A stretch of 64,000 bases of DNA from Takakia lepidozioides. Its lineage: Eukaryota; Plantae; Bryophyta. Within the stretch, counting starts at the first letter, position 1. Each line of letters opens with the position of its first letter. The stretch lies in NCBI GenBank assembly GCA_030704615.1, contig CM060732.1, positions 77,500,001 to 77,564,000 of the forward strand, given 5' to 3'. The position numbers and the translations under genes are program-made. Below the pieces are notes generated by a model. It made no database searches. It had not been told where the DNA came from and worked only from the letters and a program-made list of their open reading frames with translations. This document shows, in pieces, positions 3,001-49,785 of this stretch.

Positions 3001-6000
3001 AAGATATTTTTTGTGGGTGGAAAGATAAATTATCTGCACCCCAGGCAAACAAAGCCCCAGATGCGCATACTTCTCTCCAATTTCTCTGTAATGACACATA
3101 TGGTAGGAATTTTGGTGCTATGGGTTATAACAACCATCTGAATAATTATGTTCCTTTGGCAAACGTGATAGAACATGTTGAATCCATGTAGTTCATTGTA
3201 CAGGTACCTTCAGCTTTCTTGCATCAATCATTCATAATAGATGGCTGTGCCCTGATAAATCTTTTTCCCTTTTGGCATTTGAAGGCTTGGGACAGCACTG
3301 TCCAGCTGTTAGGCTCGCATATGGCATTAGTAGCTACTATTAACTCCAGAGCCTACATGTTACAAACTGGAGGTGCTTGAGATACCTTTGTCTGTGGAAA
3401 ATTGAAGGGACATGAGGATGTTGTAAGCAAAAGTCTATTATGCCATCCCTGATCATCAAGCGATATCAGCTCTACAGCTCCGTCCTGTAAAATGCCAGCG
3501 CACTTCTAAGCAGGCCAGATAAAATCTGTAGACAATCAAAATGGAAGTTCCTTGACATGGTTTGGCAAGCTTAAATACAGATATTACTGATGCGAACTCC
3601 TAATTTCTGGCTGGACTTCCAAGTTCCAGCTCCACTAAGTTCCTCATATTATACTGCCAATAGGTACAGTTTTCCTCGGTCCCACGTACCAAGTCATCAA
3701 GGGGAAGAAGGGAAGCAACAGGCCCAAATTGCTTGTGATTGCTGCCAGCCCAAGCCACAGACAGCCCCATAGTCTTGCAATCAAATCCAGAAAGCATCAT
3801 TGGACAATTGTCCATCTCTTCTCCATCAATCTCCTCCAATGTGTTCTTTAACTTCAATCCTTGAGATGGTCGTGTGTCTCCACTTTCCCTGGACTTTTTG
3901 TCTTTTGGGGGTTCAACTCCCACAAGCTTGTATTTCAGAGGTGGGCAACCCTGGCTATCAAGCCAGCATGGCACATATAGCTGGACAACCTTAGCAGTGA
4001 TCCCTTTCCCTCTGTTATCTTGTTGGATAAGAATCTTCACTTCTCTGTTACCATGACAAAATCAACAAAAGAAATCAACTGTGGTCATTGAATCGAACTT
4101 AGATGCATGTCACAGCAGCCCTACTTGTGGGCAAAACATCTCAAGCTCACAGTATCTTACTGGAAAGGATCTCATATAATGCGCCCACTCAGTAGATAGC
4201 AAAATTGGGATTTTTCAACTACACTTGCGACTCCCAAGTCAAGAATGTCTTTGTCCTTCTGTCAGTTACTCCAAGCCTACAGTCGTGTTTCAGTCAAACA
4301 AGTAGGAATGGCTTCACTTCACCAAAACATCCTGAATAGTTACTGCAGAACAAAACCCTATAGCAACAGTTCTCCAAAGAGGATCCATCAGTTTGCTCTG
4401 AAGATGGTGTGCGTCCTCCAGAAATAGGGTCAGGTGTGTCACCTGCCAGTTAGTGAGTTACTGACAGTGATGTACGATGCAGACTCTTTCTGCGGGTGGG
4501 AGATCAAAACTGCATCCTTTACACCACAACATACACAATCATTTAGTAGAAGTTTGAATTGCACAGATCTTCTTTCAGACTTCTAGGGCTATGATCCAAC
4601 AGTTATTACTATTGTCTAGAAGCCAAAAGTAATCAATAATATCTGAGAAGCTTATGCAGTATGACAGACAGGTGTCAAAGTCAAATCAGGTCTAAAATGT
4701 TACTAAGAAACCATCATCAAGCTTTCTTCACCGATCCCCCGTAGTATCCCAGGAGATCTGATGCACTTTCCACATAGCATTCATATCACATACTATTTGC
4801 TGCCACAAAATCTCTTAGTGAAGATAACTGTAGTATAGAGCGAAGAGAGATCTAACCTTTTTAGGATGCCAACCACCCTGTGGAGTCCATGTGAGATGGA
4901 TGGGCTGGCGGAGGTCAGCATGGAAAATGTATGCTGTCTCACCAGGATTGACCACTCCAACCTCCTTTATCAAGCGTTCCCTGCCAGAAGAATTTTCCGA
5001 GACAGAGAATTCGCATGGCATGGGCAAGAGGTTGACAAGCATTAGGGGAGCGGTTATGGTTAGCTGCCAGTCTTTGATTGGCTGCAACTGGGACCTCTTC
5101 CCAATCTCTGTTGATTTTGATTCCAAACAATACCAAACATCTTCTTCATGAGTGGCACTATCCGTTGTTTCAACTGCGCAGCATAAAAGCTCTTCAGTTT
5201 CTGTGAGGTCTCGAACTCTAAACTCCTTCATGGGTAGCTGTCTTCTACCTATCTCTAGGCGTCCCTTGTATGTCACCACTTGGCTCCAGTCATGGACAAG
5301 GTTTTCTGAGCATGGTCTGACCTGCAGGCAATGATTGACACATAATATAAACAAATTCGTCAGGCACTGCAGAACCAGACCAGGTTTTTGTGTGAGAAAT
5401 GAAATTACACATTATTGAAAGCTCAAGATTTGAAAGGAATGAAATGGTACTTTAGAAATGAAATAAATTGATACTTTATGATGTCCGCGGAAAGCTGAAA
5501 GAGCTTATGGGACAAAATGGAAAAGAACACACACAGAAGAGATTGTACTCATAAGACGTTTGCCGTAGCCTTGTGGCCATTGACCCCGCGCCCAGTTTGA
5601 GCGGGAACAAAAGGGACAGAACCTACCTCTGTCAGGGGCTGACGTTGGTAGTAAGACTTACCTCCATATATAGAATTAATCCGGGTTTTCCAGATATCCT
5701 CTAGAAATCCCTTCACACAAGCATCAATCTGCTGTGTGTGATTTGCCCAAAAACTAGGCCTCGGGAGGGCCTGGGCTTTTGGCTCAGCCTCGAGACTTTC
5801 AAAGTTGGTAAACAGGGGTACAGGCACAATACCCTTAATAGATTTGAAGAGAGCGTCTCTTTGGTGAGAGAACCCCGGACAGTGTATCAGAAAATGAATA
5901 CTGTCTTCAGATTGCCCACACAACGGGGAATTGCACTCTCCCTTTCCAAGATGTCCTCCCCCATGTCACAGACTGGAAACAAGTTCAGGGAAGTTTTCTG

Positions 6001-24000: not shown

Positions 24001-27000
24001 GGGCTGCTTTTTGGCTCCGGTTATGTCTCTCTTCTGTGTTCTTTGTGTCCCCAGACATTTAGTTATTATGTTGGTGCAGGTAGATACCTCGATGAATGAT
24101 GAGCCCCCCGGATTCCGCATGTCGCATATGTAGTGATATAGGTGGTGTTGCTCATGTATGCCATCATCACTCATGTGAAGATTCCCCAAAGCTGCTTTTA
24201 TGCCCCATGATGCTGGAAAAATCTGCAAGGAACAGCAAAAATTTATTTCAAAGATCCCTCACAGTGGCAACAAACCCCTCTCAACAGGATAGCAGCAACC
24301 CAGGCTACCTGATTGGCATCTCTCTGGGGCTCCTAGGCAATGGCAACTATGCCTGACTGCTCCCGAAGCAGCTGTGGAGGTAAGCATGACATCCTACACA
24401 CTCATTTTACGAAGTTCATTGTCAATTAGCTTCTATAGTGGAAACAATCCCCAAGCCACTGGGAGTTCATCCTTTATCCAACATGCGCTTCAATTCCCGT
24501 CTTGCTTTACTTGTCAATCCCAGTGGCTAATATTCAATTGGAAAGCGACTAAGACAAACAGTAACTGCATAGCATGGGAATTCAATTTCTCCTAGAACTG
24601 CAGTCCCATCAAGTCACTTGTTTCCTTGCAGATATCAATGCTGCAACATGAACCCCTGTGAGTGAAACTTGAAGGCAAAAAAGGAAAACCAGGTTTTCAT
24701 GATACCTTCACTTCAGTGTGCAAATCATTTTGAGAAAGAGTTGCCAGTTGAGCTCCATCCTCCATGTTGAGAACAATCTCAGCCAGGTCCATGTCCAATA
24801 CCACCAGAAAAATAACACGGTCTTTGCCTTTCCCCAACAAGCTTTTCACTACAGAGTTCTTGCGCTCAAGAGAAACTACTGTATTACCATGTTCATCCAC
24901 ATTCTCAATGACTGTTGGATCGATAGTGGTAACAACCACATCAGATTCAGCTGATGGAGGGGCAGCATTCTTGTCGGGAGGTTCTACTTCAGCATTGATG
25001 GCCGTCACAATATCCATGAGGGCAATAAGGGTTGGACGGTTGCAGTAGAACGAGAGCGTTGACAATGCCACCCTTACCTGTTGACATTGATCATACATGA
25101 TATTCAACCTCGTCGAAATGTATGATCAAACTAGATTCTGGCTTTCATAACCAGGAAGTGAAGTGCATGTATACCGATTAACTAAGCAACACAGTAGATC
25201 AGGTACACAGTGAGTACAAGCGGATGCCCAGGGACTATAATTCACACAAGCTTGGAAAAGACATTCATTTTTATTTTATCACTTCTAGGTGGCAGACACA
25301 CCCACTCAATCAGTCGAGTGCAAGGGTACTCTGCAGCATGCAACTTTACATATGTTTGCTTATTGAAGTGAACATTAGTCTTCTCAATCTCCAGACACAC
25401 AAAGCTGAAATTAACAAAATGAAAATGGATGAAAACACTTATACTCAAATTTGAATGGCCACAAGGAATATCATGCACAGTCATACCTCCTTGTCAACGT
25501 TGGCATACTCTGGTGATTCTTGAGAAGAAAAGATGATTTGGGCTTTCACAAAATTCTTCAAGTCCTCAATATGTGTCACGTCATCACCACCATTTTTGGC
25601 GGATATGGACCCTGGCAGGAGTCCAACTTCACGCCTGAAATTTGGGGGCTCTCCCTCCTCACTTTTACCCTCTTCCGCCTCAAAGACCTTTGAAGCCTCA
25701 GGGCCATTCCTATGTTGGAAGGGAGATGGGGAGCCCTCCTCATTTTTGTTGCTCTCTTCAGATGCATCAGAGTAGTCATATTTGGAGTCCTCCCCCTCAC
25801 TCTGAGACAGGTTGTTATTGTGTCCATGATTTCTAGAGTGTTTTATGTAGGAGCGAGCCAAGTATCGGCATGAGCGAGACACATGACCATGGAGTTTATC
25901 CTTTATCTTCAAAGACTGCAAAACAACTCCAACAGACAGATCGTACTTCCTCATAACAAACTCCACCTGCAATCAAGGTGATATGATTGTCAAGAACTGA
26001 TGGCTGTATGAAACCCTTCTGATGATACTGTGTGTATGTGTGCTCCGTATTAATATGGCTTTCCTTAGGGAAAAGTCACTCTGGAGATAACTCAAAGCGT
26101 GCAGTTCCAATAGCTGTCAATAGTTGTGAGGCAAGCAACATGACACGGGAGCACTGTCTGTTTCCACATAACACCTCAAGCTACCAGGTATTAGAGTGCA
26201 AATGTCACATCATAGTGAATCACTGGTTCAACTAGTGGTGACACATGAGCGAACATAATGTGCTTCTTCAGCAACATTTTCATCTTGTTGGGTTGCCTGC
26301 ATCTGATGAAGTAACTTTCACAAAATTTCTCATATCTGCAAGTGATTTAGAGATATGGTTCTTGTAACTTAGAAATGGAAAGAGTTGATAGCTTTTCCCA
26401 GATTTACCTTACTACCAATTGCACGGAACTCCAAAATAGGCTTTTCAGGCTCCAACAGTAGCCTACTCGACGTATGGTCAACCTACACATTCAGATAAGA
26501 TATGGAAATGAGTAGCAGGTGCTGATGTACTGCATAAAAAGGATCCAACCCCACCACAAAATGAAACATAAACATAGGATCCATTCTCTACTTTTGAAAC
26601 AAAAGATAAGCAAACTTAGTTCCATTCCATCCTTGATGTGTACGCCCTCAACGGCAAGCAGCTATTAACCTTAATAGGTACCAACAGACATATTCCTACT
26701 AGCTGGTGACTTCAATCTGACTTTGCTTCGTGTAAGGCCGACAGCACATGAGGAAAAGATGCCAAACACTTGACTCTGCTGTGGAGATGTGAGGGTTTCG
26801 TGGTTCCCCATTTCCTTCCATGGTAAATTATTTTGCTTGCAGTAGCCTTGTGGACATAATCTAGGCACCCAGTTCACACAAAGAGTAGATCAGGGTCAAA
26901 CAGTATCTCACATTCAGGCTGTTGCTCACAACAAGTTTGAGCTCATCCAGCACCCCTGTTAAGAAGAAGCTCTCCTGCTCTGTCGGATTCATCTTCTCAT

Positions 27001-36000: not shown

Positions 36001-39000
36001 CAATTATCAAGCAAACTCAAATTCCGGTAGAACGAGTCAGTGATTCCTGAAAGAGTGAATTGAGATTGAGAGTGGACCAACCCCAGGCTCCCCAAAGTGA
36101 GAAATGTCTGCCCTTCACAGGAGTCTTACCACTTCCACACATAACATAACAATTCCCTATAACATTTGTCTTGAACCTATGCCCTCTTTTGCAACAAGGG
36201 CTCTTTGACACCATAGCTAAATTCTACTCTATTTTGTCCTCAGCTGCGGAAGATACAACTTTTCAACAGTGGTGAGACTGCAATATCCAAGCAGAACAAT
36301 ACTGAGAATCAAGTTTTGTAAACAACTCAGAACAAGTTCTGTGTCCCAAAAGAATCAGAATCACTTGCCTTTTGAATGCGCTCAAGAGATCCACCTGTGA
36401 CGAATGTCTCTTTTCCATTTTCATCCACAGTGACTGCTGCAAGCTTTGCCAGAGTCATCCCAGCAGCAAAAGGATGCCCAGAGTTGCTGAACAATAATCA
36501 ATAAATACAACTCTGGTTATTAGAGTCTCTGATAAATCCAACTTACTTTCAACAAGAAACGTTCTGGTCTAGCCCATGTACTGTGACATTAGAAAAGATA
36601 TCACATCCCTACATGAAATTATCCTTGTCAAAGTCCTTCAGGTATGAAGATGACAGATCTTTAGTATGAGACACTACACTTTCATGCATCATTAGGCAGA
36701 AACTCACCAAATCTGACAGTACTCAAGCTCCTTCCATGTTTACATTTTAGTTTAAGAAATTTTTGTGGAGCACTTCTGTAGGTCACATACTCATTGGGTT
36801 AACAGGGTGCGCAGAAAACTTTCATCCCATAATAAACTCCCATTCCATTATAAAGTACCAGGACACCATAAAGTACCATTTCATTTTATTCTCTTTCTTC
36901 CTATCTTTTGCTTTACTGCAACCTCGGTTGGGTGCAAGCTGGAAAATGCAACAGCATAAGCATATATTCACCTGACCAAGAGCACTGAAGACTTGGCTGT
37001 CATACCTTTCAGTGTCCTCATAACGTATGTGAACATTGGTGATGGAGAGCTTCAAGTTGCCAATAACAGTGCTAATGAGAGAGCCCAGCCATGATGAATC
37101 GGTCTAGAAACACGAGCAATTTCTGTAAGGTCCTAACACAACCTTGATGGTCACATTCTAGAAATGTCCAAACCTCAGAGAACTTGTCTTGTCCAACTTC
37201 TAGTAACAATTGGAGGAACCTGTACAAAGCCTCTCCCTCTCACCGCCCATTCCCCCATCATCTCTCGATTCTAAATTTTCTTATTTCCCTTTCTCCTCCC
37301 AGTGCCAATCTTTCCACTCCTTTCCACATCCCTCCTTCCCACTGAATACAACAACAAGGTACTGACAGAGAGAAAGCAGAAGATGATACCACTTCTTGCT
37401 TCTTACTATCCTCCTTGTTTGCAGACACTAGCTTTTCCTCCTCCTCCTGCCAAATCAGTGAAGGTCAGATGTCACCAGCAGAGCCATTATCAAAGAGATA
37501 GGAGGCTCCCTTCCAATACAGCTAGGGATAAAGCATACGCAGTACATGTCATAAAAAAAAGCTCCCATAGTAGAATATGTAGTGCTTAAGGTTTGAATCG
37601 TTGCAACTTACCCTTACGCGCTGGTTTTTGGCATCTTGAACAGAACCACTACCTTTGACATCGGTTGCCGGCTCTGCCAGCACATAGATGCGGTCAAGTT
37701 GCACAACGACAGGCTCTTGCCCAAGGTGGCTCCATGGAACCTAGGGCATTGCAGACATTGCACAACATCAGTTGAGATACTTTGGATGAAGGTCAGGGTG
37801 ATTTTGGATCCATGGTGGTACCAAACCATGAGAACTGCAAGAAGTAGGAGAGCAAGCGAAGGAAAAATGGACAAGTTGACAAGCAATAACGATGTGACAT
37901 TCAGTATGAGCCCACCCTCTTCTGAACCTTCCACACACTGCACCACTAGGGTAACAAACCACAACACCTTTAGTTTGACGGAGCCCAGAAAACCAGCCTT
38001 CACTTTGATTGGCAACTTGAGGGCATTGAGAGCCTCCGGTTTCAGCTGCATGTTCGTGAGCTCCACATTTCCTGCACAATTCGTAGAAGAGCATCCACAC
38101 ATCATTCTCTCCTGAATCTACCCGGTCTGGATGATTCAAGCCAGGGAATTACGAAAAAGTGCTATTTCCTACAAATGGGTACACAGATTTTACATCTCTT
38201 CCCTCACCAAACTAGTAGTCTCCGTGGTATTGAGGCATGTCCAACTGGGTAGCTCTGACTACTGCACAGAAGGCCTTGTCACTGGTCAAACGTGCAAGGG
38301 TTTTGGGTTTAGAGCTGTGTGGTCAAGCCCAGTTAGAAGCAGATCATGGTAATTGTCAGGTCTCATAATCAGTACTTGTCCAATGACATTGTGACTACTA
38401 GAGAGAACCTGAGATTATGACGCTCTGGTGACACTAGCAGTAATGAAACAATGAGAGTCTTAGCAGCGCCCACATGGAAGAGCAGGCACTCTTTCCTCAC
38501 ACACACATTCAATCCACACTTTAAGAAGAACTAGCTTGGGGCAAAAAGACCAGAGCTACATCTTCTCCAGAGAGCAGCTAATGACTACTGTCCTATACCT
38601 GCTTAATTGCTAGAATGTGTACCAAAAACGCCCACTTTTAAGTCTACTAACAGTATGCATTGCAAACAACCACCTTCGTTTCCCATATCTGTTGAGGGAT
38701 TGATTTACATTTCGTCCAGTGATCAAGTTATGGTGACAACGAGCATGGTTAACGACCCACAAGCGATGAAAGTACCGCAACTCCCGTCTGCTGATAAGCG
38801 ACAGAATTTGTCTTGAACCAAGAGTGTGTCAGCAGACTGGGTTAAGCAGCACTAATGATGACGAATGTGAGGTCCCCAAAGAAAGGAGGTTATTGGTCTT
38901 TGCAGTCGAGGCACTCGAAAGCTAACCCACGTTTTTTCAGATGGATTGATGTGTTGGTCACATACTCTTGCCCAACCAGGCCAACTGCTTATTTAACAGA

Positions 39001-39706
39001 GTGCAACCCTGATAAGGCATGAATGTGTTGAAATGCTGAAAAACCAGGTAGACATTCACACCCTGGAGGTATCATACATTTTGATGCAGTAACAGCCAAT
39101 GCGCATTGGCCTTAACACATCCCGAGGAATCTGATCTATGCATGGATCATATAATTCACAATGCAATGCATGAATTTAATCACGATTTCTTTCCATGATT
39201 TCAGGCGTCGGCTACCACTCTCCTGTCTCTTTGTTGTTTCCTCAGCCATTTGGAGCTTCGCGCTCTAGTAATAAGGCTCCAAGAGAAAAAAAACTACTCA
39301 TAATACTTTCGTAGGGCAAGAACTCGTCGGTTTGAAGATCCGTGCTGTCAGCTGAATCCAGAACAGCAACTACCACTGCAATGTGAATCGAATCCCTCTG
39401 GAGATTGCACCATCCAGGCCATTTTGAATTTCCAAACACCCCCATCTCAAACAAACTCTAACAGGCCAGAAAATTAATGGGCCCATGAATGCGATCATTG
39501 TCCCTCAAAGCGGGTCGTTATCTTCTGCAGTCATGGATCTCGCAGGGAATGCAGCAGCAGCTGATTGAGCTCAAACCCGTCCAGAATTTTTGCAAGGGGT
39601 GATGCCTACCTTGCCAAACACTGACTTTGAGAGCTTCCTTGGACAGCCCTTCGATGTAATTCCCAAGGTACTTCTGCAAGTAGAATGCCAATTGCTCTTC
39701 CAACAT
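1..39706 (-). CDS. VPS13: VPS13 lipid-transfer protein, plant VPS13M type (Chorein-N, PH, Vps62-like repeats, C2, dysferlin/Pex-like, VAB/SHR-BD); dozens of exons; 3' end lies beyond the left edge
   Basis: Exon 1 (39610-39706) MLEEQLAFYLQKYLGNYIEGLSKEALKVSVWQ joins GNVELTNMQLKPEALNALKLPIKVKAGFLGSVKLK|VPWSHLGQEP, the Chorein-N start. Later exons give PH (VWKPRYGALAGPFLYLLES), Vps62-like repeats (SFWQPVAPPGYVSIGC, VWLPVPPPGYVALGC), PPGWEWRTDWHVDK..GWAYAFDF, YRIENRT..IKFRQ and QLDNQLP..MPVLL. The exons I checked splice in frame at GT/GC-AG sites. Confidence 0.95.
2592..2963 (+). mobile_element. 5'-truncated LINE (family A) 3' end in a VPS13 intron
   Basis: Encodes the ORF2 C-terminus (EDSIHFLRHCP zinc-knuckle region to ANNVL*) and ends ATGAGTACAA. 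Perfect 19-bp TSD tctatgacattatttgcaa at 2573-2591 and 2964-2982. Confidence 0.9.
5434..5530 (-). mobile_element. LINE family B 3' tail fragment
   Basis: Reverse complement of cccataagctc..agctttccgcggac..ataaag..catttc tail motif. Confidence 0.7.
5543..6499 (-). mobile_element. 5'-truncated LINE family A (~950 bp), post-RT ORF2 region
   Basis: LCRVIRPALEYGSAIW..LESIQ..AVQGEFGIPSLSSRRD and EDSIHFLIHCP. The 3' ~370 bp are near-identical to 2592-2963. Candidate 8-bp TSD agaagaga at 5535-5542 and 6500-6507. Confidence 0.88.
6505..6765 (-). mobile_element. LINE family B 3' end with (CATTT)n tail
   Basis: Near-identical inverted copy of 9968-10210; AAGCTC-nnn-GAGCTT hairpin then (CATTT)n. Confidence 0.85.
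8810..9136 (+). mobile_element. Degenerate LINE family B 3' end
   Basis: QFYQETLVLRDERMLQPKY matches FYRETFLVLRDDRILQ of the other copies; ends cccataagctctttgagctttctgtggacg..accatttcattt. Confidence 0.75.
9740..10275 (+). mobile_element. Three stacked LINE family B 3' ends (about 9740-9946, 9968-10210, 10211-10275)
   Basis: Three successive cccataa..gagctttccg..gac..tta..catttc tails. Confidence 0.8.
14469..14512. repeat. 22-bp tandem duplication in an intron
   Basis: tcccagaacacgtaagtagtta / tcccagaagacgtaagtagtta. Confidence 0.8.
16905..17100. repeat. Degenerate ~105-bp tandem duplication in an intron
   Basis: gcaagccagcatat(g/c)ctctcaact..ttccttcaca..ttcctaa..tcaaa..taccctc occurs twice. 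Confidence 0.65.
17262..17350 (-). mobile_element. LINE family B tail fragment
   Basis: gaaatgaaatgaaatggtgctttataacgtcc..aaagctcatagagcttatgggacaaaatggaagaaaacatgagagagg, same as 6505-6590. Confidence 0.8.
18264..18440 (-). mobile_element. Two LINE family B tail fragments
   Basis: Two gaaatgaaatg..aaagctc/ataacgtccgc motifs. Confidence 0.7.
20465..20651 (+). mobile_element. Short 5'-truncated LINE family A copy
   Basis: Homologous to 2776-2962 and ends ATGAGTACA. Perfect 16-bp TSD ttctctagaaaacggg at 20449-20464 and 20652-20667. Confidence 0.9.
21430..22070 (-). mobile_element. LINE family B ORF2 C-terminal fragment
   Basis: KLHFYRETFLVLRDDRILQPNYLS..RALGRFRVGSHNLRIETGRW, a typical post-RT LINE motif; frameshifted. 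Confidence 0.8.
23400..23972 (+). mobile_element. LINE family B 3' end with duplicated tail
   Basis: LQFYRETFLVLRDDRILQ..EEHFFFHCP followed by a 3' UTR and two tandem hairpin + (CATTT)n tails. This links the ORF to the tail motif. Confidence 0.85.
27715..28060 (+). mobile_element. LINE family B tail cluster
   Basis: cccataagctctttgagctttccgcggacgttataaagtaccatttcattt plus degenerate copies. Confidence 0.75.
33860..34395 (+). mobile_element. Degenerate LINE family B 3' end
   Basis: atagagactggtaggtggg (IETGRW), gaagaacatttc..cactgtcct (EEHF..HCP), then the tail motif. Confidence 0.75.
34516..34572 (-). mobile_element. Very short LINE family A 3' end
   Basis: tgtactcagaagacg..ttgccgtagcctcgtggccat is a degenerate reverse complement of the family A terminus. 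Confidence 0.6.
34984..35347 (-). mobile_element. TRIM (miniature LTR retrotransposon) with a tRNA-like cassette in both LTRs
   Basis: 144-bp LTRs at 34984-35127 and 35204-35347 (one mismatch, TG..CA ends) and a 76-bp internal part. On the minus strand: PBS TGGTATCAGAGCC (35191-35203, tRNA-iMet) and PPT GAGGGGGAG (35128-35136). Confidence 0.93.
35005..35076 (-). tRNA. tRNA-like sequence inside the LTR (second copy 35225-35296); not a functional tRNA
   Basis: GGACGGG TA GCTC AGTGGTA GAGC A CCCCA CCGGAAT GGGGG AGGTC CTAGG TTCAATC CCTAG CCCGACC A. Box A and box B intact, D and T arms paired, anticodon arm imperfect. Confidence 0.8.
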
Positions 39707-41703
39707 CTTGCCCGATTTGCAAGCTCCCACACCCGATCTCCTCCTTCACTGCTAACAATCTCATCCCATGTAGACAAAGAAGAATCGCTACTTCATACAG
39801 ACACTTGATTCAATCTTATAGATGAATTCACAGCCCTGCCACAAAACGCACAGAGATTGAGCACACCTGCTCAAATCCTTCGTACCTTCAGTGAATGGCG
39901 AGTTCGGCTCTTTTTCTCTTCTGACAATAGTCAGCCAGCCGTGAAGCAGCCGCTCAGTTGCAACTGCGGTGCGTAACGTATCTCACCGCGCGGTCTACCG
40001 CCGGCCTCCATGCAGACTATTCGCGGGTAGACCTAATTGGGTGGCAGCCGTTTACATTTGGGCACGCGTCCCTCTGGTAAACACGCGTCCAATGACGTGT
40101 CCCGAGCCCGACCTTCCAGGACGCTAGTACACTTGTCTTTGGACTTCTCCGCAGAAGAAGCTGCATAGTACCCAGATTTCGTCGATACACGGATGAATAC
40201 ATCCTTCATCCATCCATGGACTGGCGATCCCATGGATAAAGCAATACATGTTGTTTATGATGCCAATATGCTGGGAAATAGATGCGGCCATGCAAGTGCT
40301 TCCACGTGTACGTAGTGATTTTGTTATCGGAGGTGGATTCGCGCCACGTGTGCCTGGGTGCAGGAGTGAGACGTGGTGAAGATGGTGAAGATGGATCGCA
40401 GAAAATAGAAAGAGAAGATCAAACGTTGACGAGATCGAGAATACAAAGAAAGCTGCTCAAGAGAAGTGATCTGTTGTGCACCACGATTAATTTGGTTGGA
40501 TTGAGAGACTACCGTAGTGAGAAGGAGGAGGAGAGCGAGGGTTGCAGGTGACACCTACTTCGAACGGGCATAACTGGGGCAAACCGGTTTGCCCAAACCT
40601 ACTCCAGGACTATAAGGATTTCCTCAGGTATCCACAGGTTCACTCAGACAGGACGCAGAGCCACTTTTTATAGCTGGGTTTGCTTGATAGGTGACATCCA
40701 ACGTACACCTGTGTGAGATGAACAGCCCAGCTGCATGCCTACCGATACCTGGCAACGATTTCCTGTGGGTATGGATTCATTTCATCTGGTTCTCAAAGAC
40801 AAAATATGCATCTCGTATACATATTTGAGGCGACGGTGTGTTGTGATTGATTATCCACAGGCCGATCAGCTCCTACTTACTCGACTAACTACTGACATTG
40901 CAGTTTGGCAGCAGGTTCGATGATATCCTACAGTGGGCAGGTCTTTATCATCACCTCTGCCGGTTCATATTGATTGTCAAACTTAATGCCTAACTAATGT
41001 AGCTGTGATTCACGGAGGTGTTACAGCAGGGAGAATTGCAGATTGTGGAGGATTAAGTTTTTGAGAGATAGAGGCTTTCAAAGCCGGCTGCTCACTTGTG
41101 GCCGACTCCTGAGATTGTGCAATTTTTGGGAATTTTTAAGGTGGAAATTGTGAACTCTTGGGTGATGAATATTCTGGATTGATCACAAGACTACATTGCT
41201 GCTCTCAAGAAAGAAATGTAGAACATCTTCAGGAAGTGATTCTCCTTCATTTCAGAGCCTCTGAATTGTACACCAAAGTGTTTTCCCGCTACGCTGTGTT
41301 ATTATTGATGTTGAGAAAAACAATTGTACGATAGATCATATGTATCACTGTACAATCGGAGTATGTACAGTTCTTGCACTGGTCATACAGATTTCAACCT
41401 TCATCACCAAAACTGATGATCAGGATTCTCTGGACTCTGGACGTTACTTCTCATACTTAACTATCAGCTGCTTGAAGACGGCAAAATTGGGAAATCGCTT
41501 TTCAACTCTTCAACTCCTTAAATCCAAGATTTGATTTTACACCTTAGGAGTGCTGGACTCATATTCGTGTGCACAAGAAAATGCTAACTATTCGATGTGT
41601 TCAAACTAAAATCTGATCTTATAAGACCGGGCGCCATCTTCTTCCCTAAACTATATAATCTGCAAACATTGTCTTGCATTGTCGAACAACATGTCGACAC
41701 CTC

Positions 41704-42483
41704 TTAGAACAACTGTTTTTGGTGATGCCCATGATGATGGCCTCCCTGACTGTTTTGTTGTTGGGCTTTGTGATATTTATTCACCTCGTGATGCTCATAG
41801 AGCGCGTATCCTCCAAGCCCAACAGCTGCAGCCTCTCCAGCTTCAGCCTCAACATGGTGTCTGTGAGCATGTGCTGGATCCATCTTTTCCTCGTGACGTT
41901 CGTACTGTTCATGGACAACAAATCCGCACACCGTAGATTCTGTTAATAGCGCGCAATAGACAATGAAAGACTGGCTTGTTACTAGTCAGCATTATTCGCT
42001 AAAAGTGATGTACATATATCATGACTCTAGGCAGCAGTTCATTCATGCATACAAATCTACAAAATTCATAAGCGATTATAACGGTTGACGAGGTGGGAAA
42101 GGAACCAGAGATCTGACCAGAGCGAAAGCTCCGGCAGCTGCAGCACCCATCTCAGCCATGTGTTCTTGCTTCTTGTACTTCTGCTCCTGCTGATGAAGCG
42201 CGCCAGACGCGTCATACCCACCCTGGTAGGTTGAGATCTCACTGGCCCCATAACCACCATAGCCATTGGAAGATTGACCTCCGTATGGAATAACCTGATT
42301 ATACCCATAGAAAGACTGGGCTGGAGCGTAAGAGCCCTCTTGTCCATACCCATAAGCAGGCGGAGCTGCTCCATAGCCGTAAGCATCCGATTGAGGAGGA
42401 GGAGCTCCATAGCCGTAACCGGGTGTTTCTTCGTATGGGCCTTGCTGCTGGTGATGCTTGTGGTGGTTGTGATGGTGAGACAT
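41704..42483 (-). CDS. ASR: ASR (abscisic stress ripening, ABA/WDS domain) protein, 2 exons (42118-42483, 41704-41904), ~188 aa
   Basis: [16 protein letters not shown]|[40 protein letters not shown] is the ABA/WDS signature with its usual intron position. His-rich N-terminus and a Tyr/Gly/Pro-rich linker. Confidence 0.92.
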
Positions 42484-42637
42484 TTCGCTCGGCCTGGTCT
42501 CGACAAACTCGCTGCTGCTTTCTTTCAACACACCCCAAAAACTCTTCTCTTTGAATCCCTTCAAATCCACTTACGTAGCTCTTGCTCTCAAATGCTTCAA
42601 GTGTACAAGGGCGACAGCTTCTCAGCTAAAGACACAC

Positions 42638-42745
42638 ACATATATATACATCACTTGACGCTGTCGATATTTCAAACAGTGACAAAGCGCACGCGCTAGA
42701 AGCGGGAAGAAACACGGTGCCTTACGCGCTACACATGTCGGCTGT
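42638..42745 (-). promoter_or_regulatory. Putative ASR promoter: TATA-like run, CGCG boxes, DRE/CRT core
   Basis: tatatata at ~42641-42648, acgcgc at 42691 and 42724, GCCGAC (minus strand) at 42737-42742. Confidence 0.45.
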
Positions 42746-44162
42746 CCAAGCATCACTAGATCTTTCACACTAAATATCTCTCCGTCACACTTACCATTCT
42801 CTGGATAGTATCTGTGGATGGTGTCAGAGATATGCAGGAAAGTTCCGTCCGGGATGTAATGCTACTGCGGATGAGTACATCTCCATACATCTCTTTCATC
42901 GAGGTGTATTCTCTTCAATACTCTAATCAATTTCATGGAAGAGGAAAAGAAGTGGGGAGAAAAGAAGGGAAGAGGGCTTGGGGGATTTCCGAAGGACCCA
43001 ATTTGAGATAACAATGGCGAGGCTTGCTTTTGCAAAGATGCGTATTTCGTAGCTCTCTTCGTCGTCGTCACAGGCACAGGGATGGCACCGTGCTACACTG
43101 CTCTGCCAAGAGTGCAGGAGGATGTTGTGCTGAAGGCGCTTTACTGTCCTTGCGGTGAAGTGGCGGGAAGCCTCACATCATGCAATAGATTATCGGGTCG
43201 GGCTGTGGAGGCGAAATGGGTATCCAGCTTGGCCAAGCCGAGCTCCAGACCCTTGCGAGTTCCAATGGTAACGATGCCTCTCCACTTCAGGGATACCGGA
43301 GAAAGGTGCAGACATGTAATAAGCCTTTTGCGTGGTTTTGGTGGTCTTTCCTGTCATGAGTTGGAGCGTCCTGAGTCTGTTCCTTCCGTGGTTGTTGAAG
43401 CATCAGCAGTTCACGTCTGCATTGTAGGATGTATTGATCTTCTTTCCTTTTCTTGCATAAGAGAGAGAGTTAGCTGGCGCTTATTCAAATTCAATCACCG
43501 TCACTGTGGGTTTCGGAGCTCTCAGGGGTATCACAGGGTTGGTCCGAGAAATGCCGCCGCAAGGTCCGAGAAGAGCACGCATTTTTAGCCATTCGTCAAT
43601 CTGTAGGGGTGGTTACTAGATATGGCTGGTTTTCCCTCTGGAGCAGTGCAGAGCAACAATTTTCAGTCACAGATAAGGGGATAGAGAAAAATTTATATTC
43701 ATGATGTGTTGGTTGGCTTTGGTTAAGCCTATACGCACTGGTGGTCCCAGAGTGAGGGTGAGGTTTCTGTCTTAAAACTGGGCCTTCACACATGCCCATG
43801 TGCTCCCACACAGCCCTCGACAATTCTGTTACGAGGAATTATGTATCGATGTGGAGTAAAAACTTCATTATAAACAACACTAGGCTGCTCTATCCCCCAA
43901 CCAGAGACGGCCATGATACTAAACTGTGATTGCAGCCATCATATGCAATTGTTAAAGGGCGGGACAGGAGAAAGAAAAAGAGAATTACATTATGGCCATC
44001 GGATGCCCTAAAGAGTGCCAATGGAACACGTTTCCACAACTGTCTGCAGAACCACATCTATACAACCATGGTGAGAGAGATTGCATGGAGAAATTTGTTC
44101 ATATTCCTCAAAAAGACTCAGACAAGTAGCAGCTGGTAAAGTTCTTTTGTATTTGCATGTAG

Positions 44163-47100
44163 GCCAAAAAACGAGCAGAGATCAGCTCTGGCACCAGTTC
44201 TTCTCAGATCCTTCACAGTGGTGGGACAACAGGTTTGATAAGGTGAGGCTATCTTCATTCAGTCAGAATGTGAGAACATGGCTTCATGACGTCATGTGGA
44301 CTGATTATATCTTCAGTTGCTTACAGCAATGACAAATTTTCAGTCTTGAAAGAACAGCAATAGCACAGCTCTTGCCCTGTAAATTTGCTGAATTGTAAAT
44401 AAACTTTAAGAAATCATAGTTCATTGTTCTTTCTTGTAAGCAGACAGTGAAGGTGAAATCTGAATGTTGTTTCGTGCTTCTTGCAACAAGCTTGTCGTTT
44501 TGGTGCTGTATATGCGATTGTTGAAGGTACAGTACTGAGCTTCCCATTGGTGGTTTTGACAGAGAAGTCCAAGAGCACCAGACTTCAGACACAAGCATTC
44601 AAAGGATGCCGTTTGGATAGAGGGTCGTTCGAAACCTCCTTGGGTGAAAACTGAGCTCGCGGAGCTGGCTCAAGGTCGAGGACATTGTGGTGATATGGGG
44701 CAGCTGAAAGACGCCCTGCACATTTTGAGCCAACAAACCATTTCAGCGGACTCTGGTACTTATTTCTGTCTACTGCAGGAGTGCATCAAAATGCGAGGCC
44801 TAGCAGATGGAAAGCAGGTGCATGCCCACATGATCAAAACTGGGTTCAAGCAAAATATCTTCCTTCTCAACACTCTTGTTAACATGTATGTCAAGTGCGG
44901 GAGCATGGTGGATGCACGCCTATTGTTTGACAAAATGTCCGAACGAGATGTTCTTACATGGACAGTAATGATGGCTGGGTATGCAAAGCATGGTTGTGAC
45001 AGAGAGTCTTTGAAGATCTATGAACAAATGATATGGGAAGGAGTAGCACCAAACAGGGTCACTTTCATCTGCGTCCTCAAGGTGTGTGGCAGGCTTAAGG
45101 CCCTGGAAATAGGCAAAAAGATCCATGCGGACATCGTCAAAGCTGGAATTGCATCATATATCAAGTTGGAGAATACCCTTGTCTACATGTATGCCAGATG
45201 CGGAAGCATGAACGATGCTCGTGAAGTGTTTAACAACATGGCTCAACGGGATGTGATCTCATGGAGTGCCATGATTGCCGGATATGCTAAGCACAGGTGT
45301 GGTAGGGAAGCTGTCGAGGTGTATGAGAAAATGATACAGGAAAGGGTCACACCCGATAAGGTGACATTCATTTCTGTTGTCAATGCCTGTGCCTGTGTAG
45401 GAGCCCTGGAAAAGGGCAAGGACGTGCACATTGACATCATCAAAGCTCGGATTGTGCCAGACATAATTCTGGAGACTGCTCTTATTGACATGTATGCCAA
45501 ATGTGGGAGCATGAAGGAAGCACATCATGTGTTCAACAATATGGCTCTACGAAATGTGATCTCATGGAGTGCAATGATCGCAGGGTATGCCAAAGATGGG
45601 TGTGGGAGGCAGGCTTTGGATATCTACGAGCAAATGATAGGGGAAGGGTTGACACCCGACCAGGTCACCTTCACTTGTGTTCTCAATGCCTGTGCCAGCC
45701 TGGCAGCCCTAGAAAAGGGCAAGGAGGTGCATGCTACCATCATCAAAGTTGGGCTTGCACCAGATATCATTATGGAGACTGCCCTTGCTGACATGTATGC
45801 CAAATGTGGGGGCATGAAGGATGCGGTGCAAGTCTTTGACAATATGGCTCAACGAACTGTGGTCTCATGGAACGTCATGATCGCAGGATATGTTCAGCAT
45901 GGATGTGGTAGGGAGGCTTTTGAAATTTATCAGCAGATGACAGAAGAGAAGGTGGACCCAAACAAGGTGACATTCAGTTGTGTTCTTAATGCATGTGCCA
46001 GCCTGGCAGACCTTCGAAAGGGAAGAGAGGTCCATACTGACATCACAAAAGCTGGAATCGCGCAAGATGTCATTCTGGACACTGCCCTTGTCGACATGTA
46101 TTGCAAATGTGGGAGCACAAAGGATGCACGTCAAGTGTTTGACAATATGGCTCAAGGAAATGTGGTTTCATGGAGCGCCATGATCGCAGGATATGCTCAG
46201 AATCTGTGTGGGAGGGAGGCTTTGGAGATGTTTGAGCAAATGAGACGGGAAGGCATAACACCTAACAAGGTCACGTTCATTTCTGTTCTCAATGCTTGTG
46301 CCAGCCTGGCAGCCCTGGAAAAGGGCGTAGAGGTCCATGGTGACATCATCAAAGAAGGAATTGCACCAGATGTCATTCTGGAGAATAGCCTTGTTGACAT
46401 GTATGCAAAATGCGGGAGCGTGAAGGATGCACGTCAAGTGCTCAACAATATGTCTCAACGAGATGTGGTTTCATGGAACGGAATGATCGCAGGATACGCC
46501 CAGCATGGGTTTGGTACTGAAGCCCTGCAAGCGTTTGTAGAAATGCAAGAGGAAAGATTGGAGCCAGACTGTATTACTTTTATATGTGTTCTCTCTGCAT
46601 GTAGCCATGCTGGCCTTGTGGATGAAGGCCGTCACTTCTTTGATTCAATGAGTCGAGATCATGGCCTCACTCCTACAGTTGAGCATTATGCCTGCATCGT
46701 GGACCTTCTTGGCCGTGCAGGGCGATTGGCTGAGGCTGAGGTCTTCATTAACAAAATGCCAATTGAACCAGGTGCTTCAGTGTGGGGGGCCTTGCTTGGT
46801 GCTTGCACAATTCATGGGGATGTGGAGGTAGCAGAACGTGTGGCGAAATGCCTTCTTAAGTTAAACCCAGAGGAGGCTGCAACTTATGTGCTGCTATCAA
46901 ACATCTATGCTGCAGCTGGCAGGTGGGACGATACTGCAAAGGTGAGAAAACTGATGCAGGACAGAGGTATCAGAAAGGAACCAGGGTTCAGCTGCATTGA
47001 GGTGGGCGACCGGGAGCATAAATTCGTTGTAGATGACAGATTACATCCACAAATTGAGGAAATCCATGCTGAGTTGAATAGATTGTCTGAATGTATGAAG

Positions 47101-47388
47101 GATGGCGGGTATGTGCCTGACACTCGCTTTGTATTGCATGATGTGGAGGAGGAGCTAAAGGAATTTTCTCTCTGCCACCATAGTGAGAAGCTAGCCATTG
47201 CTTTTGGGCTCATTAGCACACCCCCTGGCACAACTCTCCGTGTGATCAAGAATCTTCGGGTGTGTGGTGACTGCCACATTGCCACCAAACTTATTTCAAA
47301 GATTGTAGGGCGCACTATTGTTGTACGGGATGCCAACCGCTTTCACCACTTTGAAAATGGGGTTTGTTCTTGTGGGGACTACTGGTGA
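44163..47388 (+). CDS. PLS-E1-E2-DYW PPR protein (organellar C-to-U editing factor) with an N-terminal OSB-type PDF motif; exons 44163-44242 and 44563-47388; further 5' exon(s) probably from ATG 43082
   Basis: About 20 PPR motifs in regular L-S-P triplets, PG box (PGFSCIE), HSEKLA..CGDCH zinc site, ends CSCGDYW. The upstream exon splices in frame (..DK|RSPRAPDF..); 44563 is exactly 27 codons before 44644. Confidence 0.93.
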
Positions 47389-49785
47389 AAAGATGTTTTT
47401 CTGGAAAGGTGCGAGTATCTTGCCTCGTTCATTGATCTGTGGAGCTACTCGGTTCAACCACCATTTCCTGAGAATATTGACCATGATGCACTGTTGAGGG
47501 CATTTCCTGTGGCATATTCACAGGAAATGATAGTGGGGTCTACCCAGCATAGGTGCGAAGGTAGGCCAATATGCACTTGACTGAAGGAGGGATTTTTTAC
47601 TGACTCTGGTGATAGCGGAAGGAAACCAGAGTGTGGTCCCAATTCTGGTGTGGGTGGGTAGTGGAGCTTCTAGCTCCGCAGGCCCCTGGAGTGGGTGGCC
47701 TGGGACTTAGCCGATTAACCTTATTTGGCACTTCGGATGACAGCAGATTTTGCACGGAACAGTAGCCCGAAGGATACCCACAGTTCCATGGGACTCCAAA
47801 GAGGAGAGCAAGGAACATCCAGTATCTCAATACACATTGACAATGCCTCCTTGTACAGATGCTTTGTGCCAACACCTCATTGCCTCACACCTGCGTAGAC
47901 AGTTGAGCTTAATGCACCTGTACGCGCCACGGCTGAGCTGCCACATGGGTTTTGACATCCTCCTCAAATCGATCAACCAGAGTCTTTCCACATTGAGACT
48001 CCACATCACCATGTCATTATACCTGGCCTGAAATTTCCCAAGAGCTACAGCTCCACGAATTTGTAGAAGAGTCAAAGACAAAAACAGGGGTGCATGAGGC
48101 TCACTCCAAGTATAGAACCCTTGAACAAAAATCTAGATCTCCATCAAAGAACATACATGTCCTAATGGGTTCTACAAAACTGCAATTCGCTAGAGGCAGC
48201 CTTTGCCACCGTGACCAGCTGAACAGATTAATCACAACAAACACATTAACAACCCCCTCCATCAATCAAACCAAATCTCCTCCAGATGTGACCACCGTGA
48301 CCAAAATAAATGAAGCTCACGGACAAGAAAGTTCCCAATAAACAATTTGCCATGCACATTGCTGCGGATTGTATGCACAATAATATTGTCTTCGGTACTA
48401 ATTGAGCTAGTCCATAATATGATCTAGTGATGGTACCTGTTCAATGTTTCCATTTTTTAGTGCAGGCTATTTAGGTACTAAATAGTAAGTTGGAGGCGGG
48501 AGAGGCCACACAGCCATCCCCCTCATTTGTATATCCTCTCCAGGGCGGTGGTCGCTCCCACCATATCTATTTCCTTGACCTTCAAAACCCCCCCAAACAA
48601 TTCTTGTGTACTTATGGTCTTTCAAGCAAGAGAGATTAACGAGGAAAGCCCTATTGAAAGGGGTTGATGGAGGTCTTTAGACAGCTCAACTAGGACAGTA
48701 TAAGGGTACTCCATCTCCAGGACAAACAGAGCATTTGTAGAAGGTCAATTGCTAGTAAACTTTTGCTAATTGAGAAATGTCCTACTCATTTCTCATATGG
48801 CTTGGCAGATTTTTGGGCAATGAACCATGTTATTATTGCCTCTTGAAGGAAGCATTAAGTAAAGTATGACACCCCAAAAGAAGCGTACATTATGTTGCCT
48901 CTTCAACTACTGTCTTCCATTGGAAAGTGGACAATTTGCACTCTACATCACCTAGGTTATGCAGAGGCAAGGCACCAACTCCCAACCACTAAGATACTTG
49001 CCCTCGTGCTAATATATAACTAAGATAAGGTGCAAACTTGGTTGTAGGTGGGCATTGTTTGATTCAAAATTTTAAGCAGTTCTTGGACCGACTAGTGAGA
49101 GTAGGCCCAATGGTTAGAGCATGCCCAGCAAGAGGCTCACTGAACTGCCGCGCTATCGCTATGCTCGCGAGGCGTATGGTGAGGCAGGCAACCTAGATAG
49201 CGCGTCGGCTGGCAAGAGCCCCAGCGGGCAACGCACCCTTACCAAAGGGGAGTAATGGCGCAGGCTGAGGTGACCGTGGGCCCCGCCACCTGCCCCGCCA
49301 CTCGTCGAAATCTGTGAGGCCCAGTGGTAGATAGCGGGGGAGAATGCCACGCTCCAAAACTCGTGTAGATACCACGGGAGTGCGTGAGGGTCACCATTTT
49401 GAAGCGTGTGAAGTGTTGTTGGGGACGCGCGATTTCGGCGGCCGCGCTATTTTGATGATTGCGCGCCAGATAGCTTAGGGCTACAAATGGTTGTGGGTTC
49501 AAAACCAGTAAGCAGGGACATTGAATGTCACCCATTATAGCTAACTCAAGTAAGAGGTATCGGGTCAGTCGATAATAATATTTTGAAATTCGCTGTTTTT
49601 CTAACAGTCTTACGAGTTTTTAAGTTACTCAACAGCAATTTATCTTTTTTCTAGAACTCCGTCTCATTTAGTCCGGCCATCCTTTTCATAACTGGGTTGG
49701 CTAAAAATGCGGACGCATTGCCGAAGCAAGCGTAAATTATGGTGTCACTTGACCTCGCTTTCCATTTACTGGGAAGGATGTCACC

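Follow-up and report, generated by a model that had tools for sequence, protein, structure and literature searches.

We analysed a 64,000-nucleotide stretch of the genome of the bryophyte Takakia lepidozioides (GenBank assembly GCA_030704615.1, contig CM060732.1, positions 77,500,001 to 77,564,000 of the forward strand), referred to below as the window, in whose numbering all positions are given unless another gene is named. The subject is the gene at 44163-47388 on the plus strand, in which an OSB-type PDF motif precedes a pentatricopeptide repeat (PPR) protein of the DYW class. With a probability of roughly 0.7, we regard this locus as a transcribed member of an old land-plant family, whose proteins are PLS-class PPR-E-DYW organellar C-to-U editors with one PDF module placed between the N-terminal leader and the PPR array.

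The module is encoded by two exons, here called A and B. Exon A (44163-44242, plus strand) contains its first half (..QLWHQFFSDPSQWWDNRFDK), the translation of the window sequence being ..RDQLWHQFFSDPSQWWDNRFDK; it is entered in phase 1, left in phase 0 after an invariant Lys, and bordered by an AG at 44161-62 and the donor AAG|GTGAGG. The following intron (44243-44562, plus strand, GT..AG, 320 nt, phase 0) splits the module at a conserved position, and exon B starts at 44563, directly behind the acceptor ..TTGACAG. Its peptide, RSPRAPDFRHK..VWIEGRSKPPWVKTEL, continues stop-free into the 914-codon open reading frame (ORF) at 44644-47388, and due to an in-frame TGA at 44557-59 the long frame opens exactly at the exon B acceptor. 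Counted from 44563, this frame comprises 941 codons with the stop codon at 47386-88, while the ORF list gives 914 aa from a GTG at 44644; together with exon A, approximately 968 codons are open from 44163 to 47388. By translation and profile match, the second half of the module and a short linker (..PDFRHK..VWIEG..PPWVKTEL) occupy 44563-44670 and are followed, on the same strand, by a PLS-class PPR array at 44671-46800, recognised by Pfam and containing six tandem 303-nt P-L-S triplets (direct repeats of period 303 at 44795-46609), and by E1/E2(/E+) motifs and the DYW cytidine deaminase domain at 46813-47388, assigned from Pfam and from matches to sequences of solved structures. As read from the sequence, the coding potential of the locus is intact from exon A onward.

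Splicing of the module was assessed on contigs from two public sequencing runs of two different studies, X1 and X2, which behave like transcriptomes. In both runs contig depth is 0 inside the intron (44292-44482) with the exons covered, and the joint 44242|44563, skipping 320 nt with GT..AG borders, occurs in three contigs per run. The X1 contigs include one of 977 nt which lies on 44561-45510 with one mismatch and carries 27 letters of exon A in front. No sequence differences are listed within the two PDF exons, and hundreds of paralogous PPR contigs were also placed on the window. These RNA-like contigs show that the exons of the PDF module are present in the mature transcript.

The PDF module is a unit of approximately 55 residues found in OSB proteins. 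Pfam has no model for it; exon A has no Pfam match and exon B only a chance match to Rrp40_N (E 0.05), while residues 1-60 of the exon B frame gave no matches in a word-based search, which reflects the limit of that search and not absence of relatives. We therefore used two profiles, one built from ten PDF modules of PPR homologues and one from 164 modules of non-PPR, OSB-like proteins only, and ran both against all 3172 six-frame pieces of the window, always with exons A and B as separate pieces. Only the exon A and exon B pieces score below E 0.01 with either profile. The PPR-derived profile matches with positions 3-26 at 1e-9 (exon A) and 25-62 at 2e-11 (exon B), the OSB-like profile with positions 2-24 at 2.8e-7 and 29-62 at 1.9e-9, respectively. 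The window module retains 17 of the 18 columns which are invariant in the ten PPR-linked modules, the exception being a Leu replaced by Val. In the opposite direction, the PPR-derived profile found 1198 matches at E <=0.001 among 1.84 billion representative proteins. Most of the best 150 are proteins of 300-520 aa with one to several C-terminal PDF copies and without PPRs, and one of them, at 1e-40, is named 'protein OSB2, chloroplastic-like' (Asparagus). The data support the motif in the window as an OSB-type PDF module, homologous to the modules of OSB proteins.

It is scarcely credible that the resemblance arose by chance or was created by forcing a splice model onto the sequence. Both peptides are indeed short, yet this is all that speaks for coincidence: they are the sole two matching pieces in 64 kb, they are collinear, cover complementary halves of the profile and meet at an intron whose position is conserved in other genes, and the joint 44242|44563 is present in contigs of both runs. 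The preliminary description of this locus, made from its sequence, had proposed canonical splicing at 44242/44563, had read 44163-44242 and 44563 onward as coding for an OSB-type PDF peptide, and had placed the two halves in frame directly before the PLS-DYW array. The GT..AG joint in the contigs, the profile matches, including the E values of 2.8e-7 and 1.9e-9 from the comparison with the OSB profile which it had suggested, and the frames together with the Pfam matches bear out these three proposals. A third PDF-like match at 24211-24309 (plus strand, E 0.024, '..KDPSQW..') covers the first half of the module only, has no PPRs nearby and was set aside as coincidental or a dead relic.

The intron inside the module provides a second line of evidence. 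Annotated relatives were mapped onto their own DNA, which located it at junction 3544|3713 in a PPR gene of Calypogeia fissa (..WWDHRLEK before the intron), at 1706|1863 in a PPR gene of Sphagnum jensenii (..WWDHRSEK) and at 5439|5529 in the third PDF module of the Asparagus OSB2-like gene (..WWDKRSNK). In these three genes, as in the window gene, the intron is in phase 0, follows the invariant Lys directly and has an AAG|GT donor. Since position and phase of the intron are the same, module and intron are homologous at the level of the gene between OSB and PPR genes, and the splice model for the window follows a structure which, on this comparison, is older than the divergence of bryophytes and vascular plants. 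With the OSB proteins (OSB1-4 / pTAC9), the window gene therefore has in common the PDF module, with profile matches in both directions and the invariant residues, and the phase-0 intron after the invariant Lys. It differs from them in that it lacks an SSB-like OB fold, has a single N-terminal module as opposed to the one to four C-terminal copies of OSBs, and continues into a PPR-DYW editor; no SSB (OB-fold) match was obtained with Pfam in exon A or in the frame from 44563, and the PPRs directly follow the module. Among the database proteins, five (P0121-P0125, 719-1160 aa) have 9 to 13 tandem PDF modules, far above the one to four described for OSBs, and one of these, P0121, shows a weak SSB-like match near its C-terminal end. 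Another, P0159 from Coptis chinensis (1526 aa), carries a kinesin motor domain behind three PDF modules; this may be a gene model in which an OSB gene was merged with an adjacent kinesin gene, and not a real fusion.

Behind the module, the gene has the anatomy of a complete editing factor body. In plant organelles, RNA editing is catalysed by PPR proteins of the DYW type, which are also under development as programmable C-to-U editors; their PLS array recognises the RNA on the 5' side of the cytidine to be edited, and deamination of that cytidine is carried out by the DYW domain. On the frame from 44563, Pfam reports PPR_2 at 1e-103 and PPR at 1e-96 with approximately 14 PPR stretches, the E_motif at 1e-20 (residues 751-813), a weak E+ motif, and the full DYW_deaminase domain at 5e-44 (residues 849-941). 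The 170 C-terminal residues match the solved synthetic PPR-DYW structure 9kfx at E 2.6e-89, and alignment to it finds HSE, CGDCH and the terminal CSCGDYW all intact; the DYW structure of OTP86 (7o4e) is matched at E 3e-43. With P-L-S repeats, E1/E2, the HxE/CxxC zinc-site motifs and a C-terminal DYW all present, the predicted protein belongs by sequence to the PLS-class PPR-DYW proteins, and by its anatomy it is most likely a site-specific organellar C-to-U editor. PLS triplets, E motifs and a DYW deaminase with HSE, CGDCH and terminal DYW are common to it and to factors such as Physcomitrium PPR56/PPR65 and Arabidopsis OTP86, from which it differs by the predicted folded PDF module between N-terminal leader and first PPR. 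To our knowledge, described editing factors carry only a presequence before the PPRs, and our literature searches gave no exception.

The window gene is, from the sequences compared, not a one-off fusion but a member of an old family reaching from bryophytes to ferns. An N-terminal WWD.R..K..PDF.HK is present in 24 of the 120 best homologues of the PPR frame (Diphasiastrum, Calypogeia, Sphagnum), always just behind the leader, and PDF-PPR proteins were found in four lineages: the lycophyte Diphasiastrum complanatum, with many genes, several species of the moss Sphagnum, the liverwort Calypogeia fissa and the fern Adiantum capillus-veneris, where one protein (P0158) has two PDF modules together with PPRs. 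The preliminary description had suggested looking for co-occurrence of the PDF motif with PPR/DYW in seed-free plants, and it is thus present in lycophyte, moss, liverwort and fern. No PDF motif was seen in proteins of Ginkgo, Cryptomeria, Taxus or angiosperms among the same best 120 homologues, which are not an exhaustive census. The annotated PDF-PPR(-DYW) genes of Diphasiastrum complanatum, Sphagnum spp., Calypogeia fissa and Adiantum capillus-veneris have the same architecture and exon structure around the module as the window gene, and their modules cluster in one clade; they differ from the window gene in that PPR-body identity is 45-58%, i.e. at the level of paralogues, and in that many of their models include an ATG-bearing leader. 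A search with the 316-aa front part of the window protein likewise returned only paralogue-level matches. Because the best identity is <=55%, the source species is absent from the protein collection.

A tree calculated from 75 modules unites 16 of the 17 PPR-linked ones in one clade with support 100/96, which also contains two short fragments, probably truncated family members; the module outside it belongs to P0134, a Logan-derived protein. The module alignment is short, so that only the branch of the PPR-linked clade should be trusted. This topology fits a single old fusion with subsequent expansion. In Diphasiastrum P0005, P0039, P0097 and others, a conserved vestige of a further PDF module, corresponding to its second half ('..KEALWINNRFNP.WV..'), lies at approximately residues 95-120, upstream of the intact one, which suggests an ancestral two-module state that has partly decayed. 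The annotations of the PDF-PPR genes carry no comment on the PDF module, and in the searchable literature, where subscription journals are thinly covered, we found neither a description of the PDF-PPR architecture nor a link between the PDF motif and PPR proteins. The PDF-PPR-DYW combination is real and ancient, and apparently undescribed.

Concerning the structure of the module, an AlphaFold2 model was calculated for a natural Diphasiastrum representative (P0066:82-143) with 75 aligned modules. It shows a confidently predicted, compact helix-strand-strand-helix arrangement with a mean predicted local distance difference test score (pLDDT) of 89.5, so that, according to the model, the PDF module folds as a domain and does not belong to a disordered presequence. 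The predicted folding as a domain also argues against removal of the module along with the transit peptide. The PPR-linked modules keep as invariant the same residues as the OSBs, namely the W/F aromatics and the PDF.HK core, and from liverworts to ferns these positions are conserved in the PPR context at a mean column identity of 69%, in contrast to only about 50% for the PPR bodies. The higher conservation of the aromatic and PDF.HK positions compared with the PPR bodies points to purifying selection on the same surface.

What this surface does in an editor can be approached from the OSB proteins. In two reviews (PMC6963530 and PMC4166229, both citing Zaegel 2006), the PDF module of OSB1 is reported to be sufficient for single-stranded DNA (ssDNA) binding and OSB proteins to prefer ssDNA over double-stranded DNA and RNA. 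For the window protein, our best guess from this analogy is that the module would provide an auxiliary, sequence-independent grip on single-stranded nucleic acid. The PPR array would then read the target RNA and the DYW domain would deaminate the cytidine, as in other DYW factors, while the PDF contact could keep the editor at the nucleoid or at a transcription bubble, or fix it to the RNA beside the PPR site. Of these two roles, the extra RNA contact is the more conservative one and tethering to nucleoid or transcription bubble the more interesting one.

A different function appears unlikely, namely that in PPR proteins the module acts as a protein-contact or sorting element, for example by associating with OSBs or proteins of the nucleoid or by governing placement within the organelle, and does not bind nucleic acid. 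The separate clade of the PPR-linked modules, apart from those of OSBs, leaves room for a changed function, and the constant position just behind the leader would suit it as well; the W/F and PDF.HK residues invariant in OSBs, however, have stayed invariant in the PPR-linked modules, and ssDNA binding is the only activity reported for the module (PMC6963530).

Several points weigh against the overall assignment of the window gene as a transcribed PDF-PPR-DYW editor. The RNA nature of both runs is a guess, and the locus-specific contig is anchored by just 27-29 letters on the exon A side. Foldseek against the PDB (best E 6.5) and a wide VIA-align search (best Z 3.0) returned no solved structural relative of the module, so that structure gives no clue to a binding mode. 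Because the PDF module of OSBs is reported to prefer ssDNA over RNA (PMC4166229), a role on RNA is not implied by the homology. The most serious points concern the 5' end of this copy. In the unspliced reading, there is no in-frame ATG between a stop at 44078-80 and the module, and exon A, entered in phase 1, contains no ATG itself. A probable leader exon at about 42908-43305 (plus strand), placed from contig extents and ending in the canonical donor AAG|GTGCAG at 43305|43306, contains several upstream ATGs, and its PDF frame is interrupted by a TAA at 43269-71 with no ATG behind it in the exon; the first in-frame ATG after this TAA lies at approximately 44689, downstream of the PDF module. 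A tblastn search with 38 N-terminal leaders of family members against 38000-44200 gave nothing below E 0.02. For the window copy, neither a start codon nor an organelle-targeting leader could thus be defined from the contigs, the scan for ATGs and donors, and the search with the leaders of relatives.

The leader exon itself is derived as follows. X1 contigs lie on 42937-43306, an X2 contig lies on 42908-43303 and has an unplaced tail of 30 letters, and one X1 contig spans 43277-44190 unbroken, i.e. retains the intron. The contig ends at 43306 and 44190 and the X2 tail are as expected if a 31-mer graph branched at a junction 43305|44163 beside the intron-retaining form; we infer this junction, which is not among the printed joints. 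Alternative start exons were sought on paper. An ATG at 43216 with the donor 43267|43268 from a scan for phase-1 donors, and an ATG at 43992 with the good donor ATG|GTGAGA at 44070|44071, are phase-compatible, and an ATG at 43082 could be combined with donors at 43154|43155 or 43196|43197; all of these were rejected as without contig support. At 43267, the X1 contig has an A where the window has a G, at a depth of 13.8. This substitution removes the ATG at 43265-67 and falls on the last base before the candidate donor 43267|43268; it is probably a difference between alleles or individuals.

It is consequently possible, and should be weighed as a real if lesser chance, that the window copy is compromised at its 5' end, being transcribed and spliced with a PDF frame that has no usable start, so that the module would be a still-intact relic. 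Such a locus would yield no protein, or translation would begin at a Met after the module and produce a PPR-DYW protein with neither PDF nor presequence. The TAA in the putative leader exon, the missing ATG in exon A together with the several upstream ATGs of the leader, and the intron-retaining contig at 43277-44190 are in line with this. Against it stand the roughly 968 open codons of 44163-47388 and the retention of 17 of 18 invariant PDF residues and of all DYW catalytic motifs. Moreover, contigs cover the gene body two to three times as deeply as the leader, which means that other 5' exons may exist, and the two phase-compatible ATG exons at 43216 and 43992 can be drawn on paper. Altogether we still prefer the assignment as a transcribed member of the PDF-PPR-DYW family.

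Two observations were made at the borders of the gene. Upstream, an ORF at 42076-42570 on the minus strand with a weak Pfam match to ABA/WDS-induced proteins (ASR-like, E 1.9e-4) lies under contigs of high depth, among them an exact 171-nt X2 contig at depth 172, and is probably a separate, strongly expressed neighbour just upstream of the PPR leader; contig depth is 0 at 42573-42763. Just 3' of the stop (47468-47560), loose ends and short skips appear in several contigs; they could reflect variation in the 3' untranslated region or cross-mapping of paralogues.

A farther-reaching model can be formulated for the family, which we consider a long shot. In it, the PDF module anchors DYW editors to ssDNA of the nucleoid or transcription bubble and thereby couples editing to transcription in bryophytes, lycophytes and ferns; seed plants would have replaced this coupling once the module was lost from PPR genes, and in the extreme form of the model the deaminase would reach ssDNA. 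Nothing in this analysis supports deamination of DNA. The value of the single locus described here is lowered by its 5' end, which lacks a defined start. Its significance lies in the family it belongs to, which points to a conserved extra module of ssDNA-binding ancestry on many DYW editors of early-diverging land plants. If the proposed contact with single-stranded nucleic acid is true, the module would provide a handle on the place and time of editing, whether during transcription at the nucleoid or on free RNA, and would explain why heavily editing lineages keep large families of editors.

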